DNA from: Dimorphilus gyrociliatus
Taxonomy: Eukaryota; Animalia; Annelida
Length of the DNA stretch: 64,000 nt
NCBI GenBank assembly: GCA_904063045.1
Contig: CAJFCJ010000005.1
Span: 1,813,988-1,877,987, forward strand
Reading direction: 5' to 3'
The notes under the pieces were generated by a model. That model searched no databases. It saw only the letters and a list, made by a program, of their open reading frames with translations, and was not told the DNA's origin. This document shows, piece after piece, positions 5,962 to 52,123 of the stretch; position 1 is the first letter of the stretch; each line of letters opens with the position of its first letter. Position numbers and translations under genes: made by a program.

Positions 5962-6060
5962 AAACTGTTCGTTTTTCGTCTGTCTGTTTATTTCGCCGGA
6001 AAATTTAGGAAAACATAATTAAAACTGTATAGCAACATAGAAAAACGAAATAAACAAAAT

Positions 6061-9000
6061 ATGGATGAATTTTCGGATGTAAGACATTTTGAATTAGTTA
6101 CTTTCGATAAATTATAACTTTGACCTGTTGTGATTAATTTAGGAAGAGGAGTATGAAGTTAGTGATGATAAAGAAAATTATATAATAGAAGACAAATCAG
6201 CGGATAGCGATGAAGAAAAATCGCAAAAAGCAGACAGCTTTGATGATATATCGAGTGTAATGTAGGTTATTTGCAATCAATTTAGACAAAAAAGCTATTA
6301 TCCTCAATTTATCAATCATTTCGATTCTAAGATTTTATAAAGTTTTATTAGTTTTTTTAGTTAAAAGTTAGACTAATGCAAAATTTTTAGGACAAATAAA
6401 GAGGAAGAAGATGATTCAAACAAGATAAATCACCAGGAACAGGTGAAAATGATCCATGCAAGAAGATTTCTTGAATATCTTTCAAATAAAGTGGATGAAA
6501 AAGAATTTGAAGTTTCAAAAATTTCGTAAGTTTCGCAATCGTTGAAAAATCAACTAGAATATCGAAGATTTTCAACTTTTAATGTGGCTAACTTTTTTTA
6601 GACACGAATTAAAGAAGTGCAGGGAAAAACTTGGGGAATTAGAAACTGAACGAAACGATATATTGAATGAAATCCAAAGCGAAGAAGATGCAGGCAATAC
6701 ATCGAGTATTAATCGTTTAAGAGCTAAATTTCAAAGATGTCAAGAAGAGCTTCACAATGAACTAGTTGTCGAAGAAACCATAATGAACTCTCTTCACGAT
6801 GCTGAGTAAGTTTTCATTCATAGAGATAATCTTCTATCGTTTATATTCTCTTTTACGACTAATCATTATATAGAATGGATTTAGCAAAAGCAGTCGTTGA
6901 AAAAGGAAATCATCAGATTGTTGATTTGAATTTACAAGAGAGAGAAGAACTATTAGATAAGCAAAAGGAAGATGCCGCAAAAGTGAGATTACGTAAGGAG
7001 AGGTCGTATGCAAAATCAGCAATAAATGCAGCAAAAAAAGAAGAAAGGTTTCAAGTTTTATTTTCTTTTTTTAATTAGAAAATTTAATTAAAACTCTATT
7101 AAATTCTTTTTAAAAGAGAAAGAATGGATATGAGAATACAAGCTGAACGAGAACAGAAATTAAGAGAAAAATTAAGTTTGGACAGTCATAATAAACATAA
7201 GCCATTTTTGCAGAAAAGCATATCAGAGTCAGTTGTTTTCTGTCTTAATATTAGTAAAATGATAACAGAATATTCTAATTTTACTTGAAATATAGAATTA
7301 AATTGAGAAAAGATTTTGAAGAAAAGGAACGAATGCTCCATCACGAAACAAGGATAAAAAATATTACGAAATTGAAGAAGGATATTACTCAAAATAAGGA
7401 TAATTTAAGAGCTTTGAGAAATCGTGACAAAGCTTTTGAACAAGAAAGGGAAGAGAGGGAAAGAAAGGAGTTGGAAGAAGTTGTGTACGCTGGTGGCAAT
7501 GCGCTAGAATTTAAATTAAAGGACCAAAGAAAAAAGGATATGATACAAGATAGAAAGTAAGAATTCACCCTTTTCAATTTGATTGAGTATTATCTATAAT
7601 ACTTTACATGTTTTATAGAAAATTTGAAGAGCAACAGAATAAGAATCATATGGAAATCATGAAGAAAATATTGAAAGAAGAACATACTATCGAAGTAAGA
7701 AAGAAGCAACTTCCTTACCTCTTTGAAACGAGAAAATCAAATGAGAAAAAGTTTGTCAAACCAATTCCGAGGAGAAAGCTTCAAGCTTTCGAGAATTATA
7801 TTAAACTTACAGAACCAACGCCTGAACCTGCAAAACTTGTCCAAAGAGAAGAAGCAGAATCTTCCGATAGTGATTTCGAAATTGAAACTGGATACAACGT
7901 AGATTATCTTTTAAAACCCGCTTCGGATGATGATAAAGAAATTTTAGCCAAACCAGAATTCGAAGGATTATGGGATGTTCACAAACGTTATTCCGTGCCA
8001 ACAGGAGAGAATGAAGAATACAAATTCAATTTGAAAAATGCAACTAAAATGGAAAAGAAAATTCTACAGAAAGTACTCGAGAAGCACAGAGAGGGAAGAG
8101 TTATTCAACAAGTTGCTGCTGGAAAAGAATTTAAAGCTGTAGGATTCTATAGTAAACCATCTGTTATACACTTTAAGGATTTTGATGTTGGGAAGACCTA
8201 CAATAAAAAAGTTATTCTAACAAATGTCTCGTACTCATTGAATTACTGTAAATTGATAGACTTTACAGAAAGATTAAAAGATTTCATTAAATTATCGTAA
8301 GTTTCAACCGATTTCTATTGAATTTTTTTAAAAGAACATCAAACTTAAATGTTAATTTCTTCATGTAGATTTGATCCACCAGGACAAATGAGCGCCGGTA
8401 TGACTTGCGAATTAAACGTTACTTTTAGCCCAAAAATTAATGAAGATTTGTTTGGAGAAGTAAAATTTTTAGCTCAAACAGGACCATTTTCAATTCCATT
8501 GAAATGTACAACTAAAAAAGTTGATGTATGTAGAAGAAGATAATTTAAGATTAAAGATTAAATAATATTCCTTTCCCTTTATTGTAGTTATCGGTTGATA
8601 CTAATCAAATAGATTTTGGTACATCAGTCATCGGTGAAAAGCTAACGAGACACATTACCTTAACAAATAAAGGAGCAAAAGCGACTTTTTACCATTTTAA
8701 TAAGATAAACCGTAATTATTCTTATCTTTTATCAATTAATTAAATATTAATTGCTGTATTTATTATCATAATCTAACTAGTACTGAAAAAAGATAGACCA
8801 TCAACAGTTGAGACTTCACTAGGTGGCGTTGTATGTATATCTTTTTTTACATTGCAACTATTTTTAAATTATTTGCTTCAATTATAATTTTGAAGTCAGG
8901 GGAATTAGAGCATGATAATGAGGGGGAAAATGAAGAAATCACCATCAAAGTCGAGTCTAGTAGGCCTTCTTCTAAAATTGAATCCCCTGAAGAAAAGGCC

Positions 9001-37846: not shown

Positions 37847-40606
37847 TTATTCAACTGACATACTGACATCTTCTACACTATCCTCTTCTTTAGTTGTATC
37901 AAGGACAAGGTTCAGTGACAAAGCCCGAGATATTCCCGGTGTATTTAATTCGCACGAACTTGTACTACCACGCTTCTCTATTGGTATTTCATGGTCACCT
38001 ATTATTCGTATCTTATCTAAGTTTAGCTCTAACGTCTTCTCCAGCATAGTAGACGCAATTGTGTTTTCTCTCTTCACAGCCAATGACTATATAACAAAAT
38101 AAGCAAGCGTTATTAATTCAATTGAAATATAATCTCGAAAAAAAGTTGGCCACTTTTACTTACCCTATGAAAATATTCGCTGGCAACTAAATACTCCTCC
38201 ATCAGTGTATAAGTAAATCCTAAAGAACACAAGGTTGACGAGTTTTGTGGATCAATTGATAGAGATTTCTTAAAATATTCTATGGCTTGTTTATAATTTC
38301 TATGAGGTTTAATGTAATGTTCGATTAATTTTCAAAAACAATTCATCAATTCTACCATATACTTTACTTTAATCTTCGGTAAACGTGACCTAAATTTGAA
38401 AACAATGGTTCCCAGCTATCCACCGAAATGTCCTCGGCGGAATGTTCAATCTTTGATAAAGCTTCTAGAAAAAGTTTTTCGGCACTCTCGTAACTACACA
38501 AGAAGAGAAGCAAGAACATTTAAAACATTTATATTTTTTCTAGAAGAAACATTTACTCTTGCATCTCATATAGGACTACACCCATTTCGTGAAGAACTGA
38601 TGGGTCGTTAGGTGCGCAATCCATTGCTTGTTTTATATATTTGGAGGCCAATTGTAAGTTACGGTCGTTGCTATACTGTTCCATTCCCATAAAAAGTAAT
38701 GGAAAATGAGATCCAGCAGCATAACGAGCAGCAATATTATACGCAGCCATCGCTTGATCGTGCTCAGAGTGTTCAGCAAAAGAGTGTCCATATGCAATCC
38801 AAGCTGGTGCATATGATTTATCAAGACTTTTTGATTTGGTAAGAAATTTTCTAGCCTTTTCAATTTGATTTAATAGTAAATAATACACTCCAATAGAATA
38901 CCAAGAAATCTGTTAGAAAAATAACATTTACGATTACAATGTACTATAAAAGCCACATTTATAAATATATATATATATTTATATATATAAACTAACCGCT
39001 TCCTTCGGATAAACCTCAACGAGCTTGTTTGCCAATGTAAATAGAGCTGGAACAATAGTACAATTAATACAGTATACAGACGTTTTTTATGCAAATTCCC
39101 TCTTGGCTAAACCCTACCATTGACTTTCCGCAACTCGTATAAAGTTGACACAAAAACCGCTAAGGCATGTTTGTATAATTTCTCTCTTCTTAATATCCTG
39201 TTAGAAACATGATAATCAAGAATAAGCTAAAATGCATTCAAGTTTATTCTCCATATGTTTAAATAGATTTTTCTTAGAAAATATTTACTTAGATAAAAGT
39301 TTAAATGCACTTTTATACTGGCAAGTATAATACAGCTTCTCTGCTTTACAAGATAAAGCGTATAAACTCTCACTCAAAGGTTTGACACTATCTGGAGCAG
39401 CTATTTCCGTTTCAGGATTAAACTGAAAGAAAAAAAGAAAAATGAACGCCAATTTTGTTTTTAATAACCTGCAGCTATATTGATTTTATTTTCCCCTAAG
39501 AGCAACGTACTTTATCCATAGATAGGGAATATGAATAGGATATTAAGTCCTTTCCGAAACTAGTTAGTCCTTTAGTATGGGCCAGTAAGTCTTCGGTTAA
39601 ATTTTTTTCTGTAAATACAATAGAAATATTTAAAAAAATCCATTTAGTTTAATAGATACTTTAACTTACCTTGACTCGTTGTTAAATAATTATGCTGCTG
39701 TAGCCAATGTAATGCCTCATAGCAAAATACATCATGCTGTAGAGCTTGTTTATAATATTCCTCTGCGAATTTTCTATCTTCTAATGCTTCACTTATTTTG
39801 GCGAGTAATAAATATATTAAGCTTTTAACCTGAAAAGAAATATAACAAACTTTGTACCAAATATCGAATTATTATAATTAAGAGCATCACACTACATTCT
39901 TTTGTTCAACACCGGGTAAATCTTGTAATTCTTTTAACTCTAATCCGGAATCAAAGGGTTTTAAAATATTCAAGGCTTTCTCCAGCTCATTTATTTCAAA
40001 CTAATTTAAAAAATAAGACTTTGTCAGAAAAGATTATTAAACAATAGACATGTTATAATGAATGCTATATACTTATAACTTACATAGCATTTGGCGACAA
40101 GAAGTTGACAGACGTAATATTTCTAGAATAATGCAATATTTCTCAAAATGTATTAAGAATAATCGTGATAAAGTTACCTTCTCTAAATATTTTGATTCAA
40201 GAATACTTGTGCAATTGTAATATTGTTTAGTTTGATAGAGCAACAAAGCGTACGTGTATACATCTTGGGGAGTTTCTAGAAAGTGTATAAAATTTTTAAG
40301 GTCAAGAATGACTAAAATTTTTATTAAATTGACTTGCCAGATGATAGACAGACAAGCTTATCGGCCCAGAAAAGTGCTGATTCTAATTCTTGCTGAAAAA
40401 TTTGAATTTTTGAGCGATAAAATGGATTTTAATCAGAAAAGTATAAAAATTTAAGTTATCAAATATTATTCAGGGATAATGTTTTAAAATTTCAAAATAG
40501 TGTAAAGGTTACGAACAACTTCACAATATTGTTTAACAATATTCCTCAAGTATTCTAAATTTTCAGTTGAAACTTTTGGCATAGAATCTGATCTAGGCGC
40601 GGCCAT
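37847..40606 (-). CDS. CDC16: Anaphase-promoting complex subunit 6
   Basis: NLEYLRNIVKQY..SALFWADKLVCLS..PQDVY; TPR segment APAWIAYGHSFA..EHDQAMAAY..GSHFPLLFMGME..APNDPSVLHEMGV; acidic C-terminus ends at 37847. Confidence 0.93.
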
Positions 40607-40630
40607 TTTAAATTTCGACTGTTCAGCTAA

Positions 40631-40700
40631 CCAATCATAGTGTTTGAACCTATTTATCAGAAACGTCCATTGATTGGATAAAAGTCGTCGACCTGGTAAC
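40631..40700. promoter_or_regulatory. Compact bidirectional CDC16/AKAP14 promoter with oppositely oriented CCAAT boxes and an X-box-like element
   Basis: CCAAT at 40631-40635, ATTGG at 40673-40677 and GTCGACCTGGTAAC at 40687-40700, within the 161 nt between the divergent ATGs. Confidence 0.45.
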
Positions 40701-40767
40701 AGCATTAGCAGACGAATTTGCAAGCAAGTCAATTAGTAAATTAGAGAAATAAAAACATTTCATCAAA

Positions 40768-41562
40768 ATGGAAAATGAGCAGTCAAATTCGAAAACCAGA
40801 GATCCGGAGTGGGAAATGTACCGAAATATCTCATCAGAGGCTTTCGACCTTGTCGATGATGTAATAAATAAAGCTATAGGGCATTTAGAAAAAGAAATGA
40901 AGGGGAGAGAAAACACATTAGAGTCGATTAAATTTGACATGTCTAGGTCTTCAACTCTAATATATGACACAGATCCCAACGTTAAAAATATTGAATGGCT
41001 TAGCATAGCTAATTTTTCAGTGGATGACGCTGTTAAGAAAATAAATGAATTCATCCAGGTAATTGAAACAAGCTAAAATAAATTGAAATTCATGTACAAA
41101 GCGCCCTTAAATCAATGCAGACATGGGAGTTCGATCAAAGTTGGTTATATTGCATCGATTTTATAAAAGAGGAAGATTTAAAATATGACTGGCGATATAA
41201 ATTTCGTGTTCGCTGGAGCATACCAACTAGACGGCAACCTATTCCCCGAGCTAGTGCGTCTGTTTATTTCGTTTTCACCAAATCAAAGATTAAACCCGAA
41301 GTTTGTTTAATTTATTAAAATATTCCAATGCATTAATTTACAATATTACTACTTCTTTTCGTTTAGGGATATCCAGTTGATGTCTTTTACGTCTTTGAAA
41401 CTCAAAGACTCGTACACAGGTAATGAAGGAGCTGAAAGATTAATTATTTATGACAAACTCTTTTTATACTCAATTAGGCCCGGAAAGTCGAAATTTAGAG
41501 AAAAATGGCTAAAAGACATTATAGAAAGTAAGGTACTAATGCTAGAAGCGGTTGAATTTTAA
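40768..41562 (+). CDS. AKAP14: A-kinase anchor protein 14 (AKAP28 domain), 4 exons
   Basis: NIEWLS..KKINEFIQ|TWEFDQSWLYCIDF..YKFRVRWSIPTRRQPIPRASASVYF..|YPVDVFYVFETQRLVHR|PGKSKFREKWLKDIIESK. Confidence 0.9.
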
Positions 41563-42788
41563 CGTATTTTCAATGCCTTAATTGGATTCGGGAAGCCTGC
41601 ATAGCAATATTTCGTCATGAGATAATCTATTAAAACTGTCGGCAAATATGGAGACACATTCATGAGTAACTGTACAAAAAAAAGAGAATAATATTTGTAA
41701 ATATACAAAAACAAGATAATTAATATGAAAATAGTTTACTTTATCATAATCGTAAAAGAAACAACTGCCTCCTGTAGTATATCTAACATATGGATGAACA
41801 GCTGTTAAAGCTTTTAAAATGTCCATAGATACTAAATTTAAATCTTTATTTGCTGTAGGTATACTATTTTTTATAGCTTTCAAATAGTGAAATATATATT
41901 CTTTGCCGTAGGTCTCTTTAACATCGTCTGAAGACGATTCCCACATTATTTCCAATTCTCTTTCTCTTTCATTATTCTTTATAAAAGAAAGAAATTGAAA
42001 TGCGATTTATTGGTTTATTACAACTTTTCTGTGTGAATTTATGGCTGAATTATACGTACAAGTAACATTCCTGTTGACCCTCCAAAGTTCCCCGGCTCTG
42101 CTAATATTACTTTTACGTTAAATGGCTTTAATTCCATTCTGAGCTGATCCGTAAAAGTAGTTATAGCATGTTTACTCATTGTGTAGGGACCATTTGCAGG
42201 ATACGATAGTCGTCCTTTTACACTGGTAACGTTTATAAGACGACCCTGAGATTTCCTCAAAAAAGGAAGGAAAGCCTTCGACATCCTAATTGTGCCATAC
42301 ATGTTAACATTTAAGACTTTCTCAAATAGCTGAAGTGGTGTCCATTCAACTTCGCCCAAGAAGTTTAATCCAGCATTATTTACTAATGCCCATAACTCCT
42401 TTGAAGATTTGATTAAGAAACTCTCTATTATCTTACACAGATTGATCACATCTTCATCAAGGGTTATATTTAACTTTACTACTCTTAAATTTTCGGTGCA
42501 ATGCATTTTCAGGTCTAAGGCACCCTTTGATTTCTCATCAAGGCAACCGGCAAAAACTATAGCTCCTTTCGAATCCAAAAGCCTTGCGAGTTGATTGCCA
42601 AATCCACTATCGCATCCGGTAATAATGACCACTTTATCCTTTATCGTCGACTTTTTTTCTTTAAAGTAATAGAGTACAGAAAAGCATATTGCTAATAAAC
42701 TTAAGGACACACTATATGGCATAACAACTGTGGAAGATAAGAGTACAAATCCTATCAACAGAAAGTAGGCGTTGCTAAAGTAATCCAT
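41559..42788 (-). CDS. Short-chain dehydrogenase/reductase, SDR9C family (BDH1/RDH-like), 3 exons
   Basis: TGCDSGFG, LVNNAG, YTMSK (YxxxK), EPGNF. Last exon 41669-41559 reads LLMNVSPYLPTVLIDYL..KIR*. Confidence 0.9.
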
Positions 42789-43553
42789 CTTCTCATTACC
42801 CCGCAAATAATGCTTGGGATATTAATGTGGATAATTGGATTGTGATTATCTGACTTTAACTGATTAACAACAAAGTAACTTCCATATAACCTAACCTAAT
42901 AAGACCAAATAAATAATCGGTCAAAAAAATGGAACACCTTGAATTTTCATAGACCAGCTTTTAATTATCGCTCTCAAATTCTTTTTCGTGTCTAAAAAAA
43001 TCATCTTTTTTTTTTAGTGAAAGATTTTTTAATGTTAGGCCTATGAAAATTGGCGGTGTTTCATACTTTTGACAGATTACGTTATACCTTAAGTAATTAT
43101 ACAAAATTGTTCATTAGTCTGCGGTGATGGTCATACTGCTTCTAAATTTAAATTATCAACTCTTTCAACTCCCTCTCTTATCCATAAGAGACAAAAAGAA
43201 TTTTTTATCCCCTCTTTTTTTCGCAATAAATCAAATCAATTTAATCAATTTCCACAGAGTAAATACAAATTTAGACAACACAAATTCGAAATAAGGTTAA
43301 AGGTTACCCAAAATAGACGAATTATTTTTTATTTGCCTAATCCTCACAATATCAAAAGGTTGAATCGATAGTTATTAAATTTTCATATTTTATTTATAAT
43401 GAATAAACATTTATTGTTCGGCATAAGCCTCAAACGCACGATCTCCAAATTTAGAGAAATAAAGAACAAAAGCATCGTTATTTCCCAAAGTTAAATTGAA
43501 AAAAAATACAAAAGATATCTTCAATATTCAAATATTGAATTTGTTCATTACAT

Positions 43554-46500
43554 TCAACGGAATTGAAGTGGACTTATTCTCAATCCTATACAATCCTTTC
43601 CGATTTCCGTAACCTGTAAAATTTTATAAATATACTTAAATTAGTATCAACAAAGAGAGAAACAAACAAATTTACCTTGGTAATTTGACAAACTTGTCCT
43701 TTAAACTCTGGTAGGTAGCAAGCATTACTAAGAGGACATTTAACAACCGGCTTGCCTCTGTAAATAGGTATGTAACTAGAAGCGCAAACATCGAAGGGGT
43801 TATGTTCATCATATCTCAAATCGTGAGCATCCGTTGGATTCTTTTCACAAACTGCAGCAAGTTTCCTTGCCTGTAAAGCAATTTCCTGCTTTGGTCCGAG
43901 TTCCAATAGCCTTAAAACAAAAAATATGTCTTCTAAATAATCAAAATTAAGAATTCACCTCTTACCTCCTTGCAAAACTTGAGGCCAATCTAAAGTTTTT
44001 AATTTTAAATGATAAATTCATAGCATTCCTCAAAGTCAAAATCATATGGACAGGTTGCAATTTGCAATGGGTGAAATAAGCAGCCATTTCGCAGATTCTC
44101 TTTTGATCTTCTATGGAATCTTTTGGCAGTTCTTTCCTTGCCTGTTCCATACTTAATCCAAGTATATACTCTCGGCATATCTCAATAAGCTGTTGGGCTT
44201 CAGCTAACTCTTGTTTGTTGTCCACAACTAGCAAGGGAACTGACAAGAGTATTGATCTAAATTTTTCAATGGCGTCTCCGAATTTTCCACTTGTGGTCAA
44301 TTGATAAGCACTCTGGAGTCTTTGAACAAGATCACCTAATTTCAAACCAACTGCTGGAACACCTTGTCGAGGCCCAGCATCTTTCCAATTTCTATGAGGA
44401 TAACCAAAGAGAGGCTCGATAGAGGGCGTGGCTTGATAACATGTTTTGGATCGTGAGTAGGTTTGAAGAAAAAGTGATTTATACTCCTTAAACTGTACGA
44501 CACCAATTTGATCGTGTAGTAAGCGAGCGGCCGTTTCAAATGAACCCGCCAATATATGATCTACCGGAAGTTGCGAATTATTACACCAGATCTGAGATTG
44601 GGAAGTACCCTTTGTAGGAGGTACAAAGAAGCCCTCGCTGCCAGCACCACTTCCAATTTCAGTGTCTCCCAAGTCCATGTCAGGTAAATCAATGTCTGCA
44701 TCATCCGGGTCCCAGCCATCACCTTCTTTTGCTTCAACATCCTCTTCGTTCACCTCGATAATTGCACCATCCTCATCTATTATTACTTCGTTATCAGACC
44801 ATTCAGCATCTTCTCCATCATCAACGGCAATCAATTTATCTTGTCTCTGAGCCGTTCCTCCAGCCGCCCATCGTCTTTCAAAGAAACCCTTCGAAACCGT
44901 CAACAGTGGCCAGTTAGTTTCGTGTTGGGCTATTGGTGGTTGAGGTTGCAGAAGCTGGGCATCAGGCATTATTTCGGGAACTTTTTCATTTGCACTTTCA
45001 AGTTTTACTTTAAGTTGTTCAGCCTCCTCGTCTAAGCCATGAGTAGCGGCAGCTAGATATGCTAGTGATTTACGACCGCAATCTTGAAGGATTTTATGTC
45101 GTTCCTTTACATCTCCCAAGTATAAAGCGTTCTGAAATTGGGCACTACGGTCCTTTCTAATTTCTGCTATTTTCATCATCTTTTTAAGCTTTTCTAAATT
45201 TCCAGTTATTAAATAGAGGAAACTAAGCTTATCGAATGATTTTGTTCTTTGATAAGCCATCTCAACAATTTGATGATTGCCTTGCAATAAGGCAACTTCA
45301 CCTAATTTTTTCCAGCATTCAGTATCATCTAAGGCTCTAGCACTCTCTAAAGCAGTTTCAATTTCGCCACATTCTAAAGCCAAACCAAATCTCGTCTTTT
45401 CATCTTTAACGAAGTGAAGGGCCACTTCCGGGTAACCCTTTTGTTGCAAATAGGCAATAATAGATTGACCAACTAGTTTTGCGTTTCTAACCATGTGCAA
45501 TACTTCATCATACTTTCGATTGATGAGAGCTAATTTAAATTTGTATTCAGTGCAGTCAATACCGAGAACTCTTGGTCGGCATTCCCTATCCAAGCAATAA
45601 ACATTGCTACCCTTAACGCGGGTGATGTAAACAGGCGTATCCAAGGTTCTAATAATACCATGATCTCCATTATGAAGAGCATATTTAATGTGATTCGATG
45701 TCGTATATATAAGTACACCATTTTCATCCCAAGCTGCTGATTTAACTCTCACATTTTCATGAATAGAGCAAAGATTTTCTAATTTGCGGTTACAAACAAC
45801 AACGTTAACTTTTCCTAATAAGGCTACGTTGGCCATATCTGGTGACCAAACTGCATAACGTAATTTTGGTACTTTCACTTGTCCTAATTGACGTTTTTGC
45901 TGAACATCGAACATTGTTACATTATCGCCATCTTTAATGAGTAGGCAACCGGTTCCAGCATAAAATATTTCGTCACAATTAGGCAATTGAACTTTTTTAG
46001 TTATTTCATTTTTCAAGTTCTTTACAATGATAGTATGGGATCGATCAAGAACGGCAAATCTATTCCTTGCAACCCAAATGGCAGTTAATCCTGAGCTTCT
46101 TTTGCTATCAGGAGCATCTGGATTCTGAGAATCAGAATCCTTTGGAACACCGTAGAGATCATATACACTATTTTCCGGTGAGCTTGCTCTGGTGGTTAGT
46201 AAAACAGCATTCTCCGCTGGATTAAAGGACATGCTATATACTGGGGATTTAAGGCCTCCTCTCAATTGCATTACGGCTGTATCCTTGCTTGTGTTAAAAT
46301 CTAGTCTTCGTAAAAGCTTTTCTTTCACATAGTACAGTAAATTTTTTTCAACAGAGAAAGCTGGTCGTTCTCTTTCAAGCTTGAAAACGAGCATGCCTGA
46401 ATCATGACCGGCTGCAAATATATTTAGTGTGGGATGAGCGGCCAAAACCCAAAATCTATCATTTTCCCTTCTAAATGTTTGCACGGCAGTTCTTTTGGAC

Positions 46501-47793
46501 ATATCCCAAACACGGATACTTTTATCTTCACTATTAGATACAATTAATTCTTGTCTTGGGTGGAAAAGAACGCAAGAAACATTATTATAATGACCTCTGC
46601 AAGTGTCAACTTCCCAGGCTTTTGACTCGTTCATTCTCCATAGCTTAATTTGCCGATCATCTGCGCCAGATATAATTAAGGGTAGGGTAGGATGGAAGCT
46701 TACCCAGTTTACTCCCCGATCGTGTCCTTCGAGAACATGTTTTACAACGGCATCTGCTGTGCCAAAGAGATCTGTTTGCCCAGGGTGCTTCAAATGATCA
46801 TCTAATCCACCTGGACCAGGAGAAATATTTTTCTTTCGCAGCCCAGAAATATCCCAGACTCTTACAGTTTGATCAAGAGAACAGGAGACAATCAAATCTT
46901 CTGTTGGATGAAATGTGGCTGCCATAACGTAATGGCTATGTCCAGTTAACACACTAACACATGATCGATTCTGCCAGTTCCAAATGCGAATTGTTTGATC
47001 ATCTGAACTACTTAAAATCCATGGGTATTCATGATGGAATGTCGTTGTCCTAACATAATCGAGATGACCAGTTAAAGTGAATATGCATCTTTTTTGTTTG
47101 TAATTCCAAACTTTTATTTTATAATCATCTCCTCCAGAAACAAAAAGAGGTTGTTGATGGTGAAAGCAGACTCCTCTTACAGGTCCTAGGGAAAATCGAG
47201 TGAAGATCACAAGTTAAAAAAGGTTTTAAAAAAAGCAAGAAGTTAATACCATCATGTTCATCAAACTTGTCCATAAGAGTGCCCATGCGATAATCCCATA
47301 ATTGAATAACTCCATTGTGTAGAGATGCCAAAACCCAGGGTCTTTTGGGATGGAAGGAAAGACCTGGAAACAAACATCATATATTGGGTATTCAGCTTTC
47401 TTGACATAAAAAAGTCTAAATCAATGATTAAAGTAGTCTTTATGGTACTAGTTGAGCTTTTGAAAGCTACTTTATAGTAAAAGGAACACATTTGCTCTTG
47501 CAAATGAAGACAAGATAGTTTACAAAACAAGAGCTTTAATCAAAGTGAAGGACACAATTTTCTTTCAAGAACACTAAAGAGTGTAACATTAATTGAAAGA
47601 GAAAAAGGTTATGAACTGAGAGTTTTTAACCAAAACTAACATAATTAAATATCTTTAAACTGTTTTGTTTGAACCGAAAATTTATTGTCATTTTACTTTC
47701 TTATTAAATATAATTCATTAAATCGCTCAGATTCATTTGAAAAGATCACAAACCTTTAACTCTAGCACTCTTGGTTTCAAATTTCGTCAACAT
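43554..47793 (-). CDS. COPA: Coatomer subunit alpha, 5 exons (47793-47754, 47363-47250, 47185-43966, 43910-43676, 43613-43554)
   Basis: [13 protein letters not shown]|[12 protein letters not shown]40 repeats, and C-terminal [17 protein letters not shown]. Confidence 0.97.
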
Positions 47794-48081
47794 TATCTGA
47801 CGGCTCTTTCCCAAGATGAGTCTTGTTCAGCCGCAAATTCTGCCACGATGAACCGGATAAACAAAACAGGAAACAGAACGGAACTGTGGTTTTACAAGGA
47901 CCGCAGTTGATCCGACAACAACTAGTGTCACCTAACGGTTTGATATAGATATTACGATATTCGATTCAACAAATCGATAAGCTGACACAGATAGATGACC
48001 TCTGTCTCGATTTAATCATTTTACTTGAAATCTGTCAGTTATTTTGCACTATTATAACTTTTGTAACTTAAGTTGAACAAT

Positions 48082-50087
48082 ATGTCTGCAAGAATTTTCC
48101 TTAGAACGCTTAATCATATCAGCTCACGACAATTTAAGGTTTCGAGAGCATCATTTCAACCTCTCCGAAACTATACACATTATCCTATAGATGATGACAT
48201 CTTTGGCTTAACTGAAGAACAAAAACAAGTAACATATTTATTAAAGAAATTGTCTTCAATTACACAAACTTGCTATTGTAGCTTAGGAGGACTGTTTTCG
48301 AATTCGCTCAAGCGGAATTGGCTCCTCATGCTGATAAAATTGATAAAGAAAATAAGTGGGACGATTTGAGAGTTTGTATTTCCTTATAGTCATTCTTCGT
48401 TGTCGGCTTAACTTGTATTTCATTTCAGAACTTTTGGTTGAAATTGGGAAATCTGGGCCTTTTAGGAATAACTGCTCCAGGTTAATAGTCTTAAGTATTA
48501 TTAGTTGGTTATTACACCTTTTCTTCATTTAGCTAAATATGGGGGTTCTGAAGGAGGTTATTTGGACCATCTGATATGTATGGAAGAAATATCTCGTGCT
48601 GCTGGAGGAATAGCATTAAGTTATGGTGCTCATTCCAATTTGTGTGTAAATCAAATTGTTCGAAACGGTAGTGAAGAACAGAAAGAAAAATATTTGCCTA
48701 AAGTAAGAAATTTCTGTTCTGATCATAAAATATGATCCTTCATTAATATAATTATTTTAGTTAATAACAGGAGAACACTTCGGTGCTCTTGCAATGTCAG
48801 AAACAACAGCTGGTTCCGATGTAGTCTCAATGAAGTGCAAAGCCGAAAAGAAGGGAGACTATTACATTCTAAATGGTTCAAAATTTTGGATAACCAACTT
48901 CTGCGATGCAGATACTCTAGTAGTATACGCTAAAACCGATATGAATTCAGCAAAGCCGCAACACGGTGTAACTGCATTTTTAATTGAAAAAGGTATGGAA
49001 GGTTTTAGCACAGGTGTACCGTTAGATAAACTTGGTATAAGAGGATCGAATACCGGGGAATTAATATTTGAGGATTGCAAAGTACCAGGTTAATAATTTT
49101 ATTTTTTCTTTTATGACTTGTAAAGTGAGAAAAAAAAATTATGTTTAAAAGTGAAGAATGTTCTTGGCAAAGAGGGTAGAGGAATATACGTGCTCTTTAG
49201 CGGCTTGGATATTGAAAGGGTTCTTGCAAGTGCCGGTCCTTTAGGGTGAGCTCAATACGATTTCGCAAATACATTATGCATATGCATTATATACAGTGTA
49301 TGTAAATATGCATATGAGCTACTTACCAAATTTTCCGACTCTCTCGTTATTAAGACCCCGTCCATGAAATTCCACATTTTAGACATAATTATAGTTTATT
49401 GTTTTAAGATACTACTGTATTATATAATTATATATGATATTAGCTTCAAAGTATAGCCATTATTTTCTCATTAACAGAGAAAAATATATTGGGTAAAACT
49501 AACCGTGGAATTTACGTTCTATTTAGTGGTCTTGATATAGAAAGATTAGTATTATCAGGAGGACCGCTTGGGTATATGATTCTTAAATCTATATTATGAA
49601 AAAGAATAATAATATTTATAATTTTTTTAGATTAATGCAAGCTGCGTGCGATATTGCATTTAAATATGCTCATGATCGAGAACAATTTGGCGTTAAAATT
49701 GGTACGTTCCAAATGCTGCAGGCTAAAATGGCGGAAATGTATGTTAAATTAAACACCACTAGGTCGTATGTCTATACCATTGCTCGAAGTTTGGACAAAG
49801 GTCTAATACTACCAAAGGTTGGGTGTTTAGAAAATGATATATAATTGTAAATAATAACTCTAAAAAATATAATTCAGGACTGTGCTGCATCCATCCTGTA
49901 TGCTGCAGAAGAAGCAACCAAATGCGCACTTGACGCCATCCAAATTCTAGGTGGTAACGGCTATATCAACGATTACGCTACTGGCAGAATCTTGAGAGAT
50001 TGTAAACTTTATGAAATTGGAGCAGGAACAACGGAAGTTAGAAAACTTGTTATAGGAAGAGCCTTAAATTCGGAATACACTAAATAA
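48082..50087 (+). CDS. IVD: Isovaleryl-CoA dehydrogenase with a tandem duplicated internal exon (49152-49245 and 49478-49571)
   Basis: Mitochondrial leader, [94 protein letters not shown]. Confidence 0.96.
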
Positions 50088-50477
50088 TGTTTGAAAGTTT
50101 AAGTAATAAATTCATTGCGAATTTCAATCGAAATTATAAACTGACTTATTTATATACAGATCAATTAAACTGTTTAAAATATTCCCTATCCTAGTTTCCA
50201 TATCTCCTACTAAGAAAAAATGATTTTATTAATCTCTTATCTCGAAGTAAAACTTTCCCTTAACACTTATTGTCTTAATATTATTAAATTAGAAACATGG
50301 CCTGTAGTATATCCTTTCTATCATATTTAAAAGAGATATTCAAATGATTAAGTAAAAAATAGGCTAGTATTGGCCTAATAATATCAAATAAAGCTAAATA
50401 GGGAAGTTATATTGCAAATAGATTGGAATATATCACGATTTAGAATCAGATCAATCTTTGACGATCGGTAAAACAAG

Positions 50478-50756
50478 ATGCTTAAATTTCGTTGCGATGT
50501 AGAAACTATAGTTGAAAGTGAGTTTATAGAACTATTTCTATAAAAACTAGACAAGTCTATTGATTTGAAACTATATTCCAATCAACGTATTCTTTTAGAG
50601 ACCTATAATTTGCTTCACACCAAAGTATTACGACAAATCAAAGGACGTGAAGGTCAAGAAAGAGATGATATTATTCAACTCATTGAAGAATTAACTATCA
50701 ATCATGATTGTTGCAAATCTTGGATAGGAGGTGTATTCTATAAATAATTACTGTCT

Positions 50757-50788
<32 letters not shown>

Positions 50789-52123
50789 ATGTTTATTAGG
50801 ATGTTACTTCGACTCGAGCTCAATTAATCCAATCGATATTGAACCAAAGACGAGCCAGGATTCCAACTCTGGATATCTTTATATTACCAACAAAAAACGT
50901 AGGTATATTTCTTAATAATATCAATACCCGCCGTATAACTATATATTTTTTTAGCTTCCTCAATAAAACGACCATTTAGTATAGGTTTAATAATATATCC
51001 ATTATCTATTCGCATGATTATAATTCTAAAAAAAACCTATTTATTCATATATTTTATAAAATATTGCAATATTTGTATCATTTATAGTTCATTGATGAAG
51101 AATGTCTATACGCTTTTTCTATTGTTATATTATTTTTGCATGAAAAATTCTTTGCAATTTGAGATTTTAACTTTTCACTTATTCAGTTATCCCTCTAGTG
51201 TCGAAAAGTAAATTGAAGAAGTTTTGTGTTGTAAAGAATAATATACTATCAGTTTACGACAAAGAGGATTCCCTGGAAGTTAATCAAACTTATCCAATTG
51301 GAAAAGGAGGAGGTACTTTTTGAACTATGAACTTTTTCAGCTTTCTTATAATACTTTTCCAGGGTACGAAATGAAGAACTATAAAGAAGACAAGAAGAAA
51401 GCGACATTCGATTTTGTATCTCCCGGAAATTATGTTATAAAGGTTTATTTTTGCAATTTTTGTCATTGAAAATATTAAATTTTCAAAACGAAATCATTAA
51501 ATAGTGTGAGACAGTCAACAGAGAGGATGGACCACTGTGGAAACGTCTGTTAGACCCTGACAACGTGCTATTTGAGAGAGCAGAATGTACTAATTCAGAT
51601 AATCCAAGTTCCCAATCCGCGGACCCTGAGATTATGGATGATTACGATGACGGAAATTTTATAAACTCCAATTTGAAAAGAACAGATGACATTGAGTAAC
51701 AAGATACATAATTACACCATATTAGGGATGATAAATTATAGTTTTCTTTTTTTCTCAGAGACAATATTTATTACGATGTTCAAACAGTTGTCACTCAACC
51801 AACGGAAAAGAAATCTCATTTGACCAATCCTACTACAGCTCAGGTAATCTGTCCTCTTGCACAATTGATTTATCTTATTAATTCATATCCAATACTTTTG
51901 TTTCTACTAGGATGAGGAAGAGAGCTTGAGAGAAGACGACTGTGAAAATCTCTATCATGCTATTTACGATAGCTGTTGTGATGCACAGGATCAATTGATA
52001 TTTAAAAGAGGTGATATTATAAAAATAGGAAAAGATTATGGTGAATGGTTAGTTGGCTACATGAAGGGTACATATGGACTGGTTCCTAAGAGTTATCTAA
52101 GGCCAGCCTATCAAAGAGTATAA
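50478..52123 (+). CDS. Src kinase-associated phosphoprotein (SKAP)-like adaptor: PH domain, Tyr motif, SH3
   Basis: Spliced product contains DVETIV, PH-like SGYLYITNKK..KKFCVVKNNILSVY, EDNIYYDV, and a C-terminal SH3 LIFKRGDII..WLVGYMKGTYGLVPKSYL resembling SKAP2 LSFKRGDVI..WWVGEMKGAIGLVPKAYI. Confidence 0.7.

Follow-up and report, generated by a model that had tools for sequence, protein, structure and literature searches.

Tandem copies of the catalytic exon in the IVD gene of Dimorphilus gyrociliatus are candidate mutually exclusive exons

Substrate range among the acyl-CoA dehydrogenases is split among paralogous genes. The isovaleryl-CoA dehydrogenase (IVD) gene of the annelid Dimorphilus gyrociliatus raises the question of whether a single gene of this family can encode two enzymes. 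The gene lies in a stretch of 64,000 nucleotides that was analysed as a whole and is referred to here as the window. Within the gene, the exon that carries the catalytic glutamate is present twice in tandem. The initial annotation of the window, which was made from the letters alone, proposed that the two copies are mutually exclusive exons that provide two active sites. It can be asked whether each copy is a working part of an enzyme, whether the choice between them would change the acyl pocket, and how old the arrangement is.

The IVD gene and its two copies of exon 6

The manual model of the IVD gene extends from start to stop codon at 48082..50087 on the plus strand and has eight coding exons and one extra copy of exon 6. 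All parts of the gene described below are given on this strand. Exons were queried singly or as separate alignment rows, and they were joined only in scripts for stop and length counts. Exon 1 (48082..48228) begins with the ATG at 48082 and is presumed to encode a mitochondrial presequence; relatives align to its 3' part. Exon 2 (48282..48371) and exon 3 (48429..48480) are IVD coding exons. Exon 4 (48533..48702) encodes a wall of the pocket, with the equivalents of human L127, A131, and L135, and aligns without gaps to residues 100-155 of 8sgr_A. Exon 5 (48761..49088) encodes the ACAD middle domain and is in phase 1 at its end. Beyond the two copies of exon 6 are exon 7 (49631..49817), another IVD coding exon, and exon 8 (49878..50087). 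Exon 8 encodes the Gly-Ala pair that corresponds to human G406/A407, aligns without gaps to residues 359-425 of 9jq4_A, and ends with the TAA at 50085-87.

With a single copy of exon 6, the IVD model has 425 codons. An exon-by-exon Pfam scan matched PF02771, PF02770, and PF00441 (ACAD N, M, and C) in the expected order. Human IVD (1ivh, 8sgr, and 9jq4, the last being the E286A mutant) was the best solved relative for each of exons 4, 6A, 6B, and 8. The proteins of relatives share the IVD exon bounds, and their one segment at this place aligns with both A and B. Window positions 39554-51793 are identical to a 12,240-nt stretch of CAJFCJ010000005.1. The neighboring gene was identified with 100% identity as coatomer alpha (DgyrCDS3559; 43554..47793, minus strand). 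It is arranged head-to-head with IVD, with 288 nt between the two genes. D. gyrociliatus is a miniature annelid with a median intron of 66 bp (PMC7854359).

The two copies of exon 6 are copy A (49152..49245) and copy B (49478..49571). Each is 94 nt in length and has its own splice sites, with AG at 49150-51 for A and 49476-77 for B and GT at 49246-47 and 49572-73, respectively. These coordinates and sites were read directly from the sequence and agree with the tandem pair of equal phase that had been described. Copy A is preceded by an intron of 63 nt (49089..49151) that contains a purine-rich tract and ends with an AAG acceptor. The spacer intron between the copies is 232 nt (49246..49477; 449 nt in a sister species that is discussed below), and the intron between copy B and exon 7 is 59 nt (49572..49630). 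Both copies are in identical phase relative to exon 5 (end 49088) and exon 7 (start 49631). The catalytic Glu codon is at 49214-49216 in A and at 49540-49542 in B. When residues are counted from this Glu, position E+4 is Ala in A (codon 49226-49228) and Leu in B (codon 49552-49554). No third copy of exon 6 was found in the 64,000-nt window.

The proteins encoded by A and B are identical at 24 of 32 residues, with the two split codons included, and they share an invariant core of 14 residues. The translations match those in the initial annotation. At the DNA level, 55 of 94 nucleotides are identical. Among the 30 full codons, seven are identical, 16 have synonymous differences, and seven have residue changes. 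Differences at codon positions 1, 2, and 3 number 11, 5, and 22, respectively, and synonymous divergence is saturated. The synonymous third-position differences had been read as the mark of an old duplication, and the counts agree with that reading. The saturation of synonymous sites also indicates that the copies have not recently undergone gene conversion.

The reading frame restricts how the copies can be used. When A or B is included alone, the frame is open to the TAA at 50085-87. When both are included or neither is included, early stops appear. With copies of 94 nt, the frame is lost on double inclusion and on skipping of both, which leaves transcripts with exactly one copy as the only ones that encode the enzyme. 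The one-or-the-other logic that had been put forward for this locus is thus upheld by the stop counts for all four combinations.

Catalytic and pocket residues

Both copies align to residues 235-263 of 1ivh_A, and the Glu of each falls on residue 254. This is E254 of the mature human enzyme and E286 of its precursor, so the catalytic Glu had been placed correctly in this exon. The position that is catalytic in ACADM is Gly-Ala in the IVD of D. gyrociliatus, not Glu. The Asp and Arg that flank the catalytic Glu are kept in both A and B. In human IVD, these two residues contact CoA (PMC12369846).

The residues that follow Glu-Arg are L-V-L-S-G in copy B and V-L-A-S-A in copy A. Residues at these positions were counted in 120 full-length IVDs that span eukaryotes and bacteria. 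Position E+2 is Leu in 110, Val in 6, and Ala in 4, and E+3 is Val in 118. Position E+4 is Leu in every one of them (120/120). Position E+5 is Ser in 73, Ala in 40, and Thr in 7, and E+6 is divided between Gly (62) and Ala (58). Copy B has the Leu found in all 120 proteins at E+4 and is thus the canonical copy, with A as the derived one, as had been suggested. Copy A deviates at two near-invariant sites, E+3 (Val to Leu) and E+4 (Leu to Ala). The initial annotation had named Leu to Ala and Gly to Ala as the unusual changes of copy A. The first stands, as E+4 is invariant. The second, at E+6, does not, as Ala is present there in 58 of the 120, and the change of Val to Leu at E+3 had been missed.

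The position of these changes can be compared with what is described for the human enzyme. In the cryo-EM structure of human IVD, L127 and L290 make up a barrier at the pocket's lower end that keeps out chains of roughly C7 or longer, and G406/A407 give space for the branched chain (PMC12369846). In medium-chain ACADM, Thr and Val are found at the L127 and L290 positions, and the path is wider for longer chains (PMC12369846). Human L290 in precursor numbering is L258 of the mature protein and corresponds to E+4. A role in the pocket had been given to L258, and the published structure names this residue, as L290, as a chain-length barrier together with L127.

The equivalents of L127, A131, and L135 in exon 4 and of G406/A407 in exon 8 are all kept in the window gene. 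The Leu-Leu barrier (L127 and L290) is complete in isoform B, and isoform A has Ala in place of L290. The L290 equivalent is the sole named pocket residue that is altered by the splice choice. Copy A is like ACADM in that the residue at the L290 position is changed, to Val in ACADM and to Ala in A. In the ACAD family at large, specificity is varied through duplication of whole genes, whereas in the IVD pair a single exon is duplicated and the other pocket residues are common to both products.

The exon pair in other genomes

The same pair was found in a sister species, which is represented by three identical contigs (L004, L005, and L008; Logan runs SRR23372216, SRR23372228, and SRR23372231). 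Identity to the window is 88% for coatomer alpha and, at the DNA level, about 78% for the IVD region. The introns of the two species are unalignable. Contig L008 contains the whole IVD gene with both copies of exon 6 in the same order, each of 94 nt and each with AG and GT, and with the same frame behavior. The head-to-head arrangement of coatomer alpha and IVD is also present. The presence of the same pair in a second species places it beyond chance. Judged from the two genomes, the dinophilid pair is older than the split between them.

Rates of change were compared between the window and the sister species. The constitutive IVD exons have a dS of 1.6-1.8 and a dN of 0.023-0.026. Copy A has 12 nucleotide differences and two residue changes (dN 0.030, dS 0.71), and copy B has 16 nucleotide differences and one residue change (dN 0.045, dS 1.18). 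The dN/dS is about 0.04 for A and for B separately. Copy A has kept its length, its phase, both of its splice sites, its open frame, and 28 of 30 residues. In a neutral simulation of copy A with 20,000 trials, the mean was 8.4 residue changes, two or fewer were seen in a fraction of 5e-5, and a stop appeared in 36%. By these rates, each copy is maintained as coding sequence in its frame by purifying selection. Such strong selection, while the introns have become unalignable, indicates that copy A is a live coding exon, and we infer from it that A is included in the mRNA of D. gyrociliatus.

These rates bear on whether copy A is instead a dead remnant, left by an old duplication and never included in functional mRNA. 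The acceptor of A is the weakest in the gene. In addition, no transcript-derived protein of D. gyrociliatus was found; a search with exon 5 gave genomic ORF fragments only, and a profile made from the exon-row alignment, which was dominated by the full-length relative in its first row, returned no Dimorphilus protein. However, copy A is intact and has kept nearly all of its residues at a dS of at least 0.7, beside introns that are unalignable. Purifying selection on A in its frame excludes the dead relic, and almost no weight is given to it here.

A similar pair is present in the IVD gene of the brachiopod Lingula anatina (L012). It has an A-type copy at 7904-7997 (E-R-A-L-G-G-A-G) and a B-type copy at 8197-8290 (E-R-L-F-L-A-A-G). 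Each is 94 nt and has AG and GT, and the A-type copy is located 199 nt upstream of the B-type copy. Stop counts demonstrate that only single inclusion keeps the frame open. The NCBI RefSeq models of Lingula already contain both forms, with X1 (XP_013382495.1) being B-type and X2 (XP_013382503.1) being A-type. The two are 430 residues each, and their 14 differences are all within exon 6. The Lingula pair is like that of Dimorphilus in its gene and exon, in its upstream A-type copy, in the Leu at E+3, and in the small residue at E+4. That small residue is Gly in the Lingula A-type copy (Ala in Dimorphilus A), and the Lingula B-type copy has Leu at E+4. The pair differs in that it belongs to another phylum and is known from automatic gene models.

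Thus, for the proposal of a mutually exclusive pair, the geometry and the frame logic have been confirmed, both copies are under purifying selection, and the Lingula pair is annotated as isoforms X1 and X2. It had also been suggested that no such case was described in IVD. A literature search for a tandem exon pair in IVD or in any acyl-CoA dehydrogenase found no paper, so this holds for publications. It does not hold for databases, as the RefSeq models show the pair in Lingula.

The A-type isoform of Lingula (X2) was modelled with an alignment of 50 sequences. Its numbering is that of the human precursor, with Glu at residue 286 and Gly at residue 290. The model has a mean pLDDT of 87.8 and a pTM of 0.87. 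Residues 261-300 have a pLDDT of 91-98, and a helix extends over 275-311. In the structural comparison, human IVD (8sgr_A) was the best match, with a TM of 0.97 (target-normalised) and an rmsd of 1.3 A. As modelled, the A-type segment is compatible with the IVD fold.

The Lingula isoforms also bear on a use of copy A that would yield no protein. As a poison exon, A would be joined to B only to trigger decay and would lower IVD without ever making protein. Transcripts with A and B would stop early, upstream of two exon junctions, and the acceptor of A is weak. However, nothing beyond length and splice sites would have to be kept in a poison exon, yet A is conserved at the amino-acid level (P = 5e-5), and an A-only isoform is annotated in Lingula. 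The purifying selection on A in its frame argues against the poison exon, which is considered very improbable.

The public annotation of D. gyrociliatus provides a different product. The NCBI gene has a range of exactly 48082-50087, and its product of 453 aa is 28 more than the 425-aa single-copy model. There are 20 open GT-AG solutions of 453 codons, and one of these retains five of the six canonical sites and shifts the donor of A alone, to the weak gtcctt at 49236. The public model probably merges a shortened A with the full B and hides the alternative pair. If this model were the real product, the enzyme would contain a tandem catalytic repeat, and both the annotated length over the exact range of the gene and the open model with five canonical sites are in accord with it. 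Against it, the internal donor is gtcctt, whereas the canonical donor gtgagc is shared by the sister species and Lingula. In Lingula, each isoform has exactly one of the two copies and is 430 aa long, and an insertion of 28 residues would double the catalytic helix within a tightly packed domain. The repeat enzyme is therefore regarded as very improbable, and either-or use of the copies is preferred.

Other loci were explored for pairs. A metagenome scan with a degenerate DNA pattern of the shared A-type signature identified a eukaryotic contig (L016; JAAUYG010248822.1) in which the exon occurs three times in tandem, each copy being 94 nt with its own AG and GT, followed by exons 7 and 8. A small residue is found at E+4 in two of these copies; the last is of the canonical type. 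The second match to the pattern (L015) was rejected as chance, with a GC of 0.68 and without IVD exons. Three further candidates with a small E+4 residue (P0022, P0023, and P0008) were rejected as pairs because they are single-copy genes. Isoforms X1-X3 of the copepod Eurytemora were rejected as an exon pair as well, as their lengths differ and the locus, which includes 623 N, has one copy.

The single-copy IVD loci are L001, L002, L003, L006, L007, L009, L010, and L014, the last being that of Eurytemora, with gaps. In two of these, the sole copy has a small residue at E+4, Ala in L001 and Gly in L002. A small residue at this position may therefore be compatible with ordinary IVD function.

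This bears directly on what the swap does. It is possible that both isoforms are made but have the same acyl-CoA preference, and that the swap tunes rate, stability, flavin redox, or regulation. The two single-copy genes are in favor of this reading. In addition, A and B differ ahead of the helix (E-G vs T-N) in both Dimorphilus and Lingula, at residues that are not described as pocket residues. However, the consistent differences at E+2 to E+4 are located one helical turn past the catalytic base, and E+4 is the named chain-length barrier (PMC12369846) and is invariant in the 120 IVDs. A shared preference is a reading to be kept in view, but it is somewhat unlikely.

A change in the pocket is preferred. 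In the proposed mechanism, the Glu exon would have been duplicated in tandem to give 6A and 6B, one of which would be included per mRNA. Isoform B would be the canonical IVD. Isoform A would keep the Glu, the residues that contact CoA, L127, and the Gly-Ala pair, with L258/L290 changed to Ala and the preceding Val to Leu. With Ala in place of the barrier Leu, the bottom of the pocket could be opened or reshaped, and A may accept longer or bulkier acyl-CoAs than B. It is considered quite likely that 6A and 6B are mutually exclusive exons from tandem duplication and that isoform A opens or reshapes the acyl pocket, which would result in two substrate ranges. From sequence, the IVD gene of D. gyrociliatus probably makes two enzymes with different pockets.

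Choice between the copies, their origin, and their meaning

The splice sites can indicate which copy is used by default. The acceptor of A is AAG in Dimorphilus, the sister species, and Lingula, in contrast to the CAG or TAG of all other acceptors that were examined. The 20 nt upstream of A contain six and eight pyrimidines in the two dinophilids, compared with 9-16 elsewhere. The donor of A is a strong gtgag (gtgagc in the window) and is kept in the sister species and Lingula. The AAG acceptor and the weak pyrimidine tract of A suggest that B would be spliced by default, with inclusion of A under regulation.

There are several ways in which the joining of A to B could be prevented, among them competing RNA structures, steric hindrance, and spliceosome incompatibility. 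Steric exclusion is unlikely, as the spacers are 232 nt in the window, 449 nt in the sister species, and 199 nt in Lingula. All of the sites are GT-AG. A frame-shifting length that leads to a premature stop on double inclusion is a known decay-based route of exclusion (PMC6071210), and the early stop of A+B transcripts has two later exon junctions downstream of it.

A candidate regulatory helix was found in the dinophilids. The motif AAATTCCAC (49367..49375, plus strand) in the spacer is the reverse complement of 49505-49513 in copy B and could be one arm of the helix. It is common to the two dinophilid spacers, which are otherwise unalignable, and is 111 and 99 nt upstream of B. In both species, it could pair with the same segment of copy B without a mismatch. 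The minimum-energy structure of the local RNA contains the helix in both dinophilids, and the helix would enclose the branch site and acceptor of B. Coincident pairing of spacer and B was found in 1.46% of dinucleotide shuffles of both spacers, in a test that was post hoc. No comparable helix between spacer and B was seen in Lingula or L016. Whole-spacer RNAduplex gave no informative pairing, and a long A/T-rich inverted repeat around copy A was rejected as probably chance. Compared with known docking/selector systems, the IVD pair has only one candidate intron-exon helix, in dinophilids.

The pairs in different phyla could come from one duplication or from several. The A-type copy is upstream in every pair. 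Dimorphilus, its sister species, and Lingula have five discriminating columns in common (E vs T, G vs N, and x-L-small vs L-x-L), and the change of Val to Leu at E+3 is common to A-type copies across phyla. These three features favor a single ancient duplication. On the other side, when the pocket columns are left out, A and B within a species match at 22 of 25 residues, compared with 16-17 of 25 for either against its Lingula counterpart. The Lingula copies are as near to the other Dimorphilus copy as to their own counterpart (also 16-17 of 25), and the E-G vs T-N columns are absent from L016. The likeness within species and the columns of L016 count against a single ancient duplication. When the copies were grouped by their non-pocket residues, deep orthology was neither supported nor contradicted. 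A single origin is slightly ahead of repeated duplication with convergence.

A broader proposal can be made from these observations. The IVD splice switch that removes the Leu gate would predate the annelid/brachiopod split and would have been kept for more than half a billion years for a second specificity, and in dinophilids an RNA helix between intron and exon would determine the choice by covering the default exon's acceptor. This proposal is offered tentatively and is thought rather unlikely.

Exons 9 and 10 of pyruvate kinase PKM are a classic enzyme example of mutually exclusive exons. Exons of this kind that come from tandem exon duplication are a known class (PMC6071210, PMC9013439, PMC8373072), and exons 7a/7b of ATE1 are an enzyme example (PMC7797038). 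Like other members, the IVD pair consists of neighboring homologous exons that agree in length and phase, and the length is not divisible by three. It is unlike the general class in that the swapped piece carries the catalytic base and the chain-length residue of a mitochondrial flavoenzyme. The IVD case adds to the known class of tandem-duplicated exons and is already visible in the Lingula RefSeq models.

As gene predictors generally choose one copy of an exon pair or merge both, the number of similar pairs in other enzymes is probably underestimated.

Should the substrate ranges of the two isoforms differ, the gene would be a natural experiment on the specificity of the IVD pocket. It would also mean that D. 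gyrociliatus, which has a very compact genome, obtains metabolic breadth through splicing and not through extra genes.

Annotated product of the IVD gene and the copy A region

The IVD gene (48082-50087, +) carries its sixth exon in two tandem 94-nt copies, the derived copy A (49152-49245) and the canonical copy B (49478-49571). In the public annotation (NCBI CAJFCJ010000005.1), a product of 453 residues is assigned to this gene, with the gene call at 1707-3712 of L013, the stretch of the NCBI record that overlaps the window. The models with one copy of exon 6, whether A or B, are 28 residues shorter. An open frame of 453 codons is reached most simply if copy A, shortened by use of a weak internal donor at 49236, is joined to the whole of copy B.

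When the window was compared with the sister species, copy A had a dS of 0.71 (49154-49243, only 30 codons), less than half of the 1.6-1.8 found for the constitutive exons (48535-49087). Over these few codons, the low synonymous divergence would fit added constraint from splicing signals within an alternative exon. The spacer between copies A and B contains a short A/T-rich palindromic block (49270-49316) in which TATGCATATG occurs twice, 32 nt apart. A counterpart of this block is absent from the sister species.

Coatomer alpha and the IVD intergenic region

The coding starts of coatomer alpha (43554-47793, -) and IVD are arranged head-to-head, and this arrangement is also present in the sister species (L008 9231-10000). 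Because just 288 nt (47794-48081) separate the two coding starts, the genes probably have a common bidirectional promoter.

Gene loss is well known for the D. gyrociliatus genome. A second coatomer alpha, P0282 (DgyrCDS461), was found in this species with only 75% identity to the one in the window, a distance similar to that of mollusc orthologues. It is an old paralogue, which is unexpected given this gene loss. Elsewhere in the window, strand asymmetry is unusually strong at 6001-8000 (GC skew of 0.21 and AT skew of 0.20) compared with the remainder.

A-type exons and apparent fusion proteins

Exon 5 was matched two times by several representatives of approximately 740-800 residues, P0001, P0010, P0069, P0077, P0079, and P0113. 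These look like tandem fusions of two acyl-CoA dehydrogenase units.

In Lingula anatina (LFEI02000948.1), a partial second IVD gene (L012 11585-13467) lies immediately downstream of the first. Either a tandem gene duplication or a repeat in the assembly may account for it. In the RefSeq product of this second gene, XP_013382531.1 (262 aa), the exon is of the A type, the type that in D. gyrociliatus and the first Lingula gene carries a small residue four positions after the catalytic Glu. The exon 6 equivalent is single in two eukaryotes, where the chain-length Leu is replaced by Ala (L001 8799-8888; GCA_045014175.1 CP138446.1) or Gly (L002 1461-1544). Thus, an A-like pocket can be the sole state of a gene.
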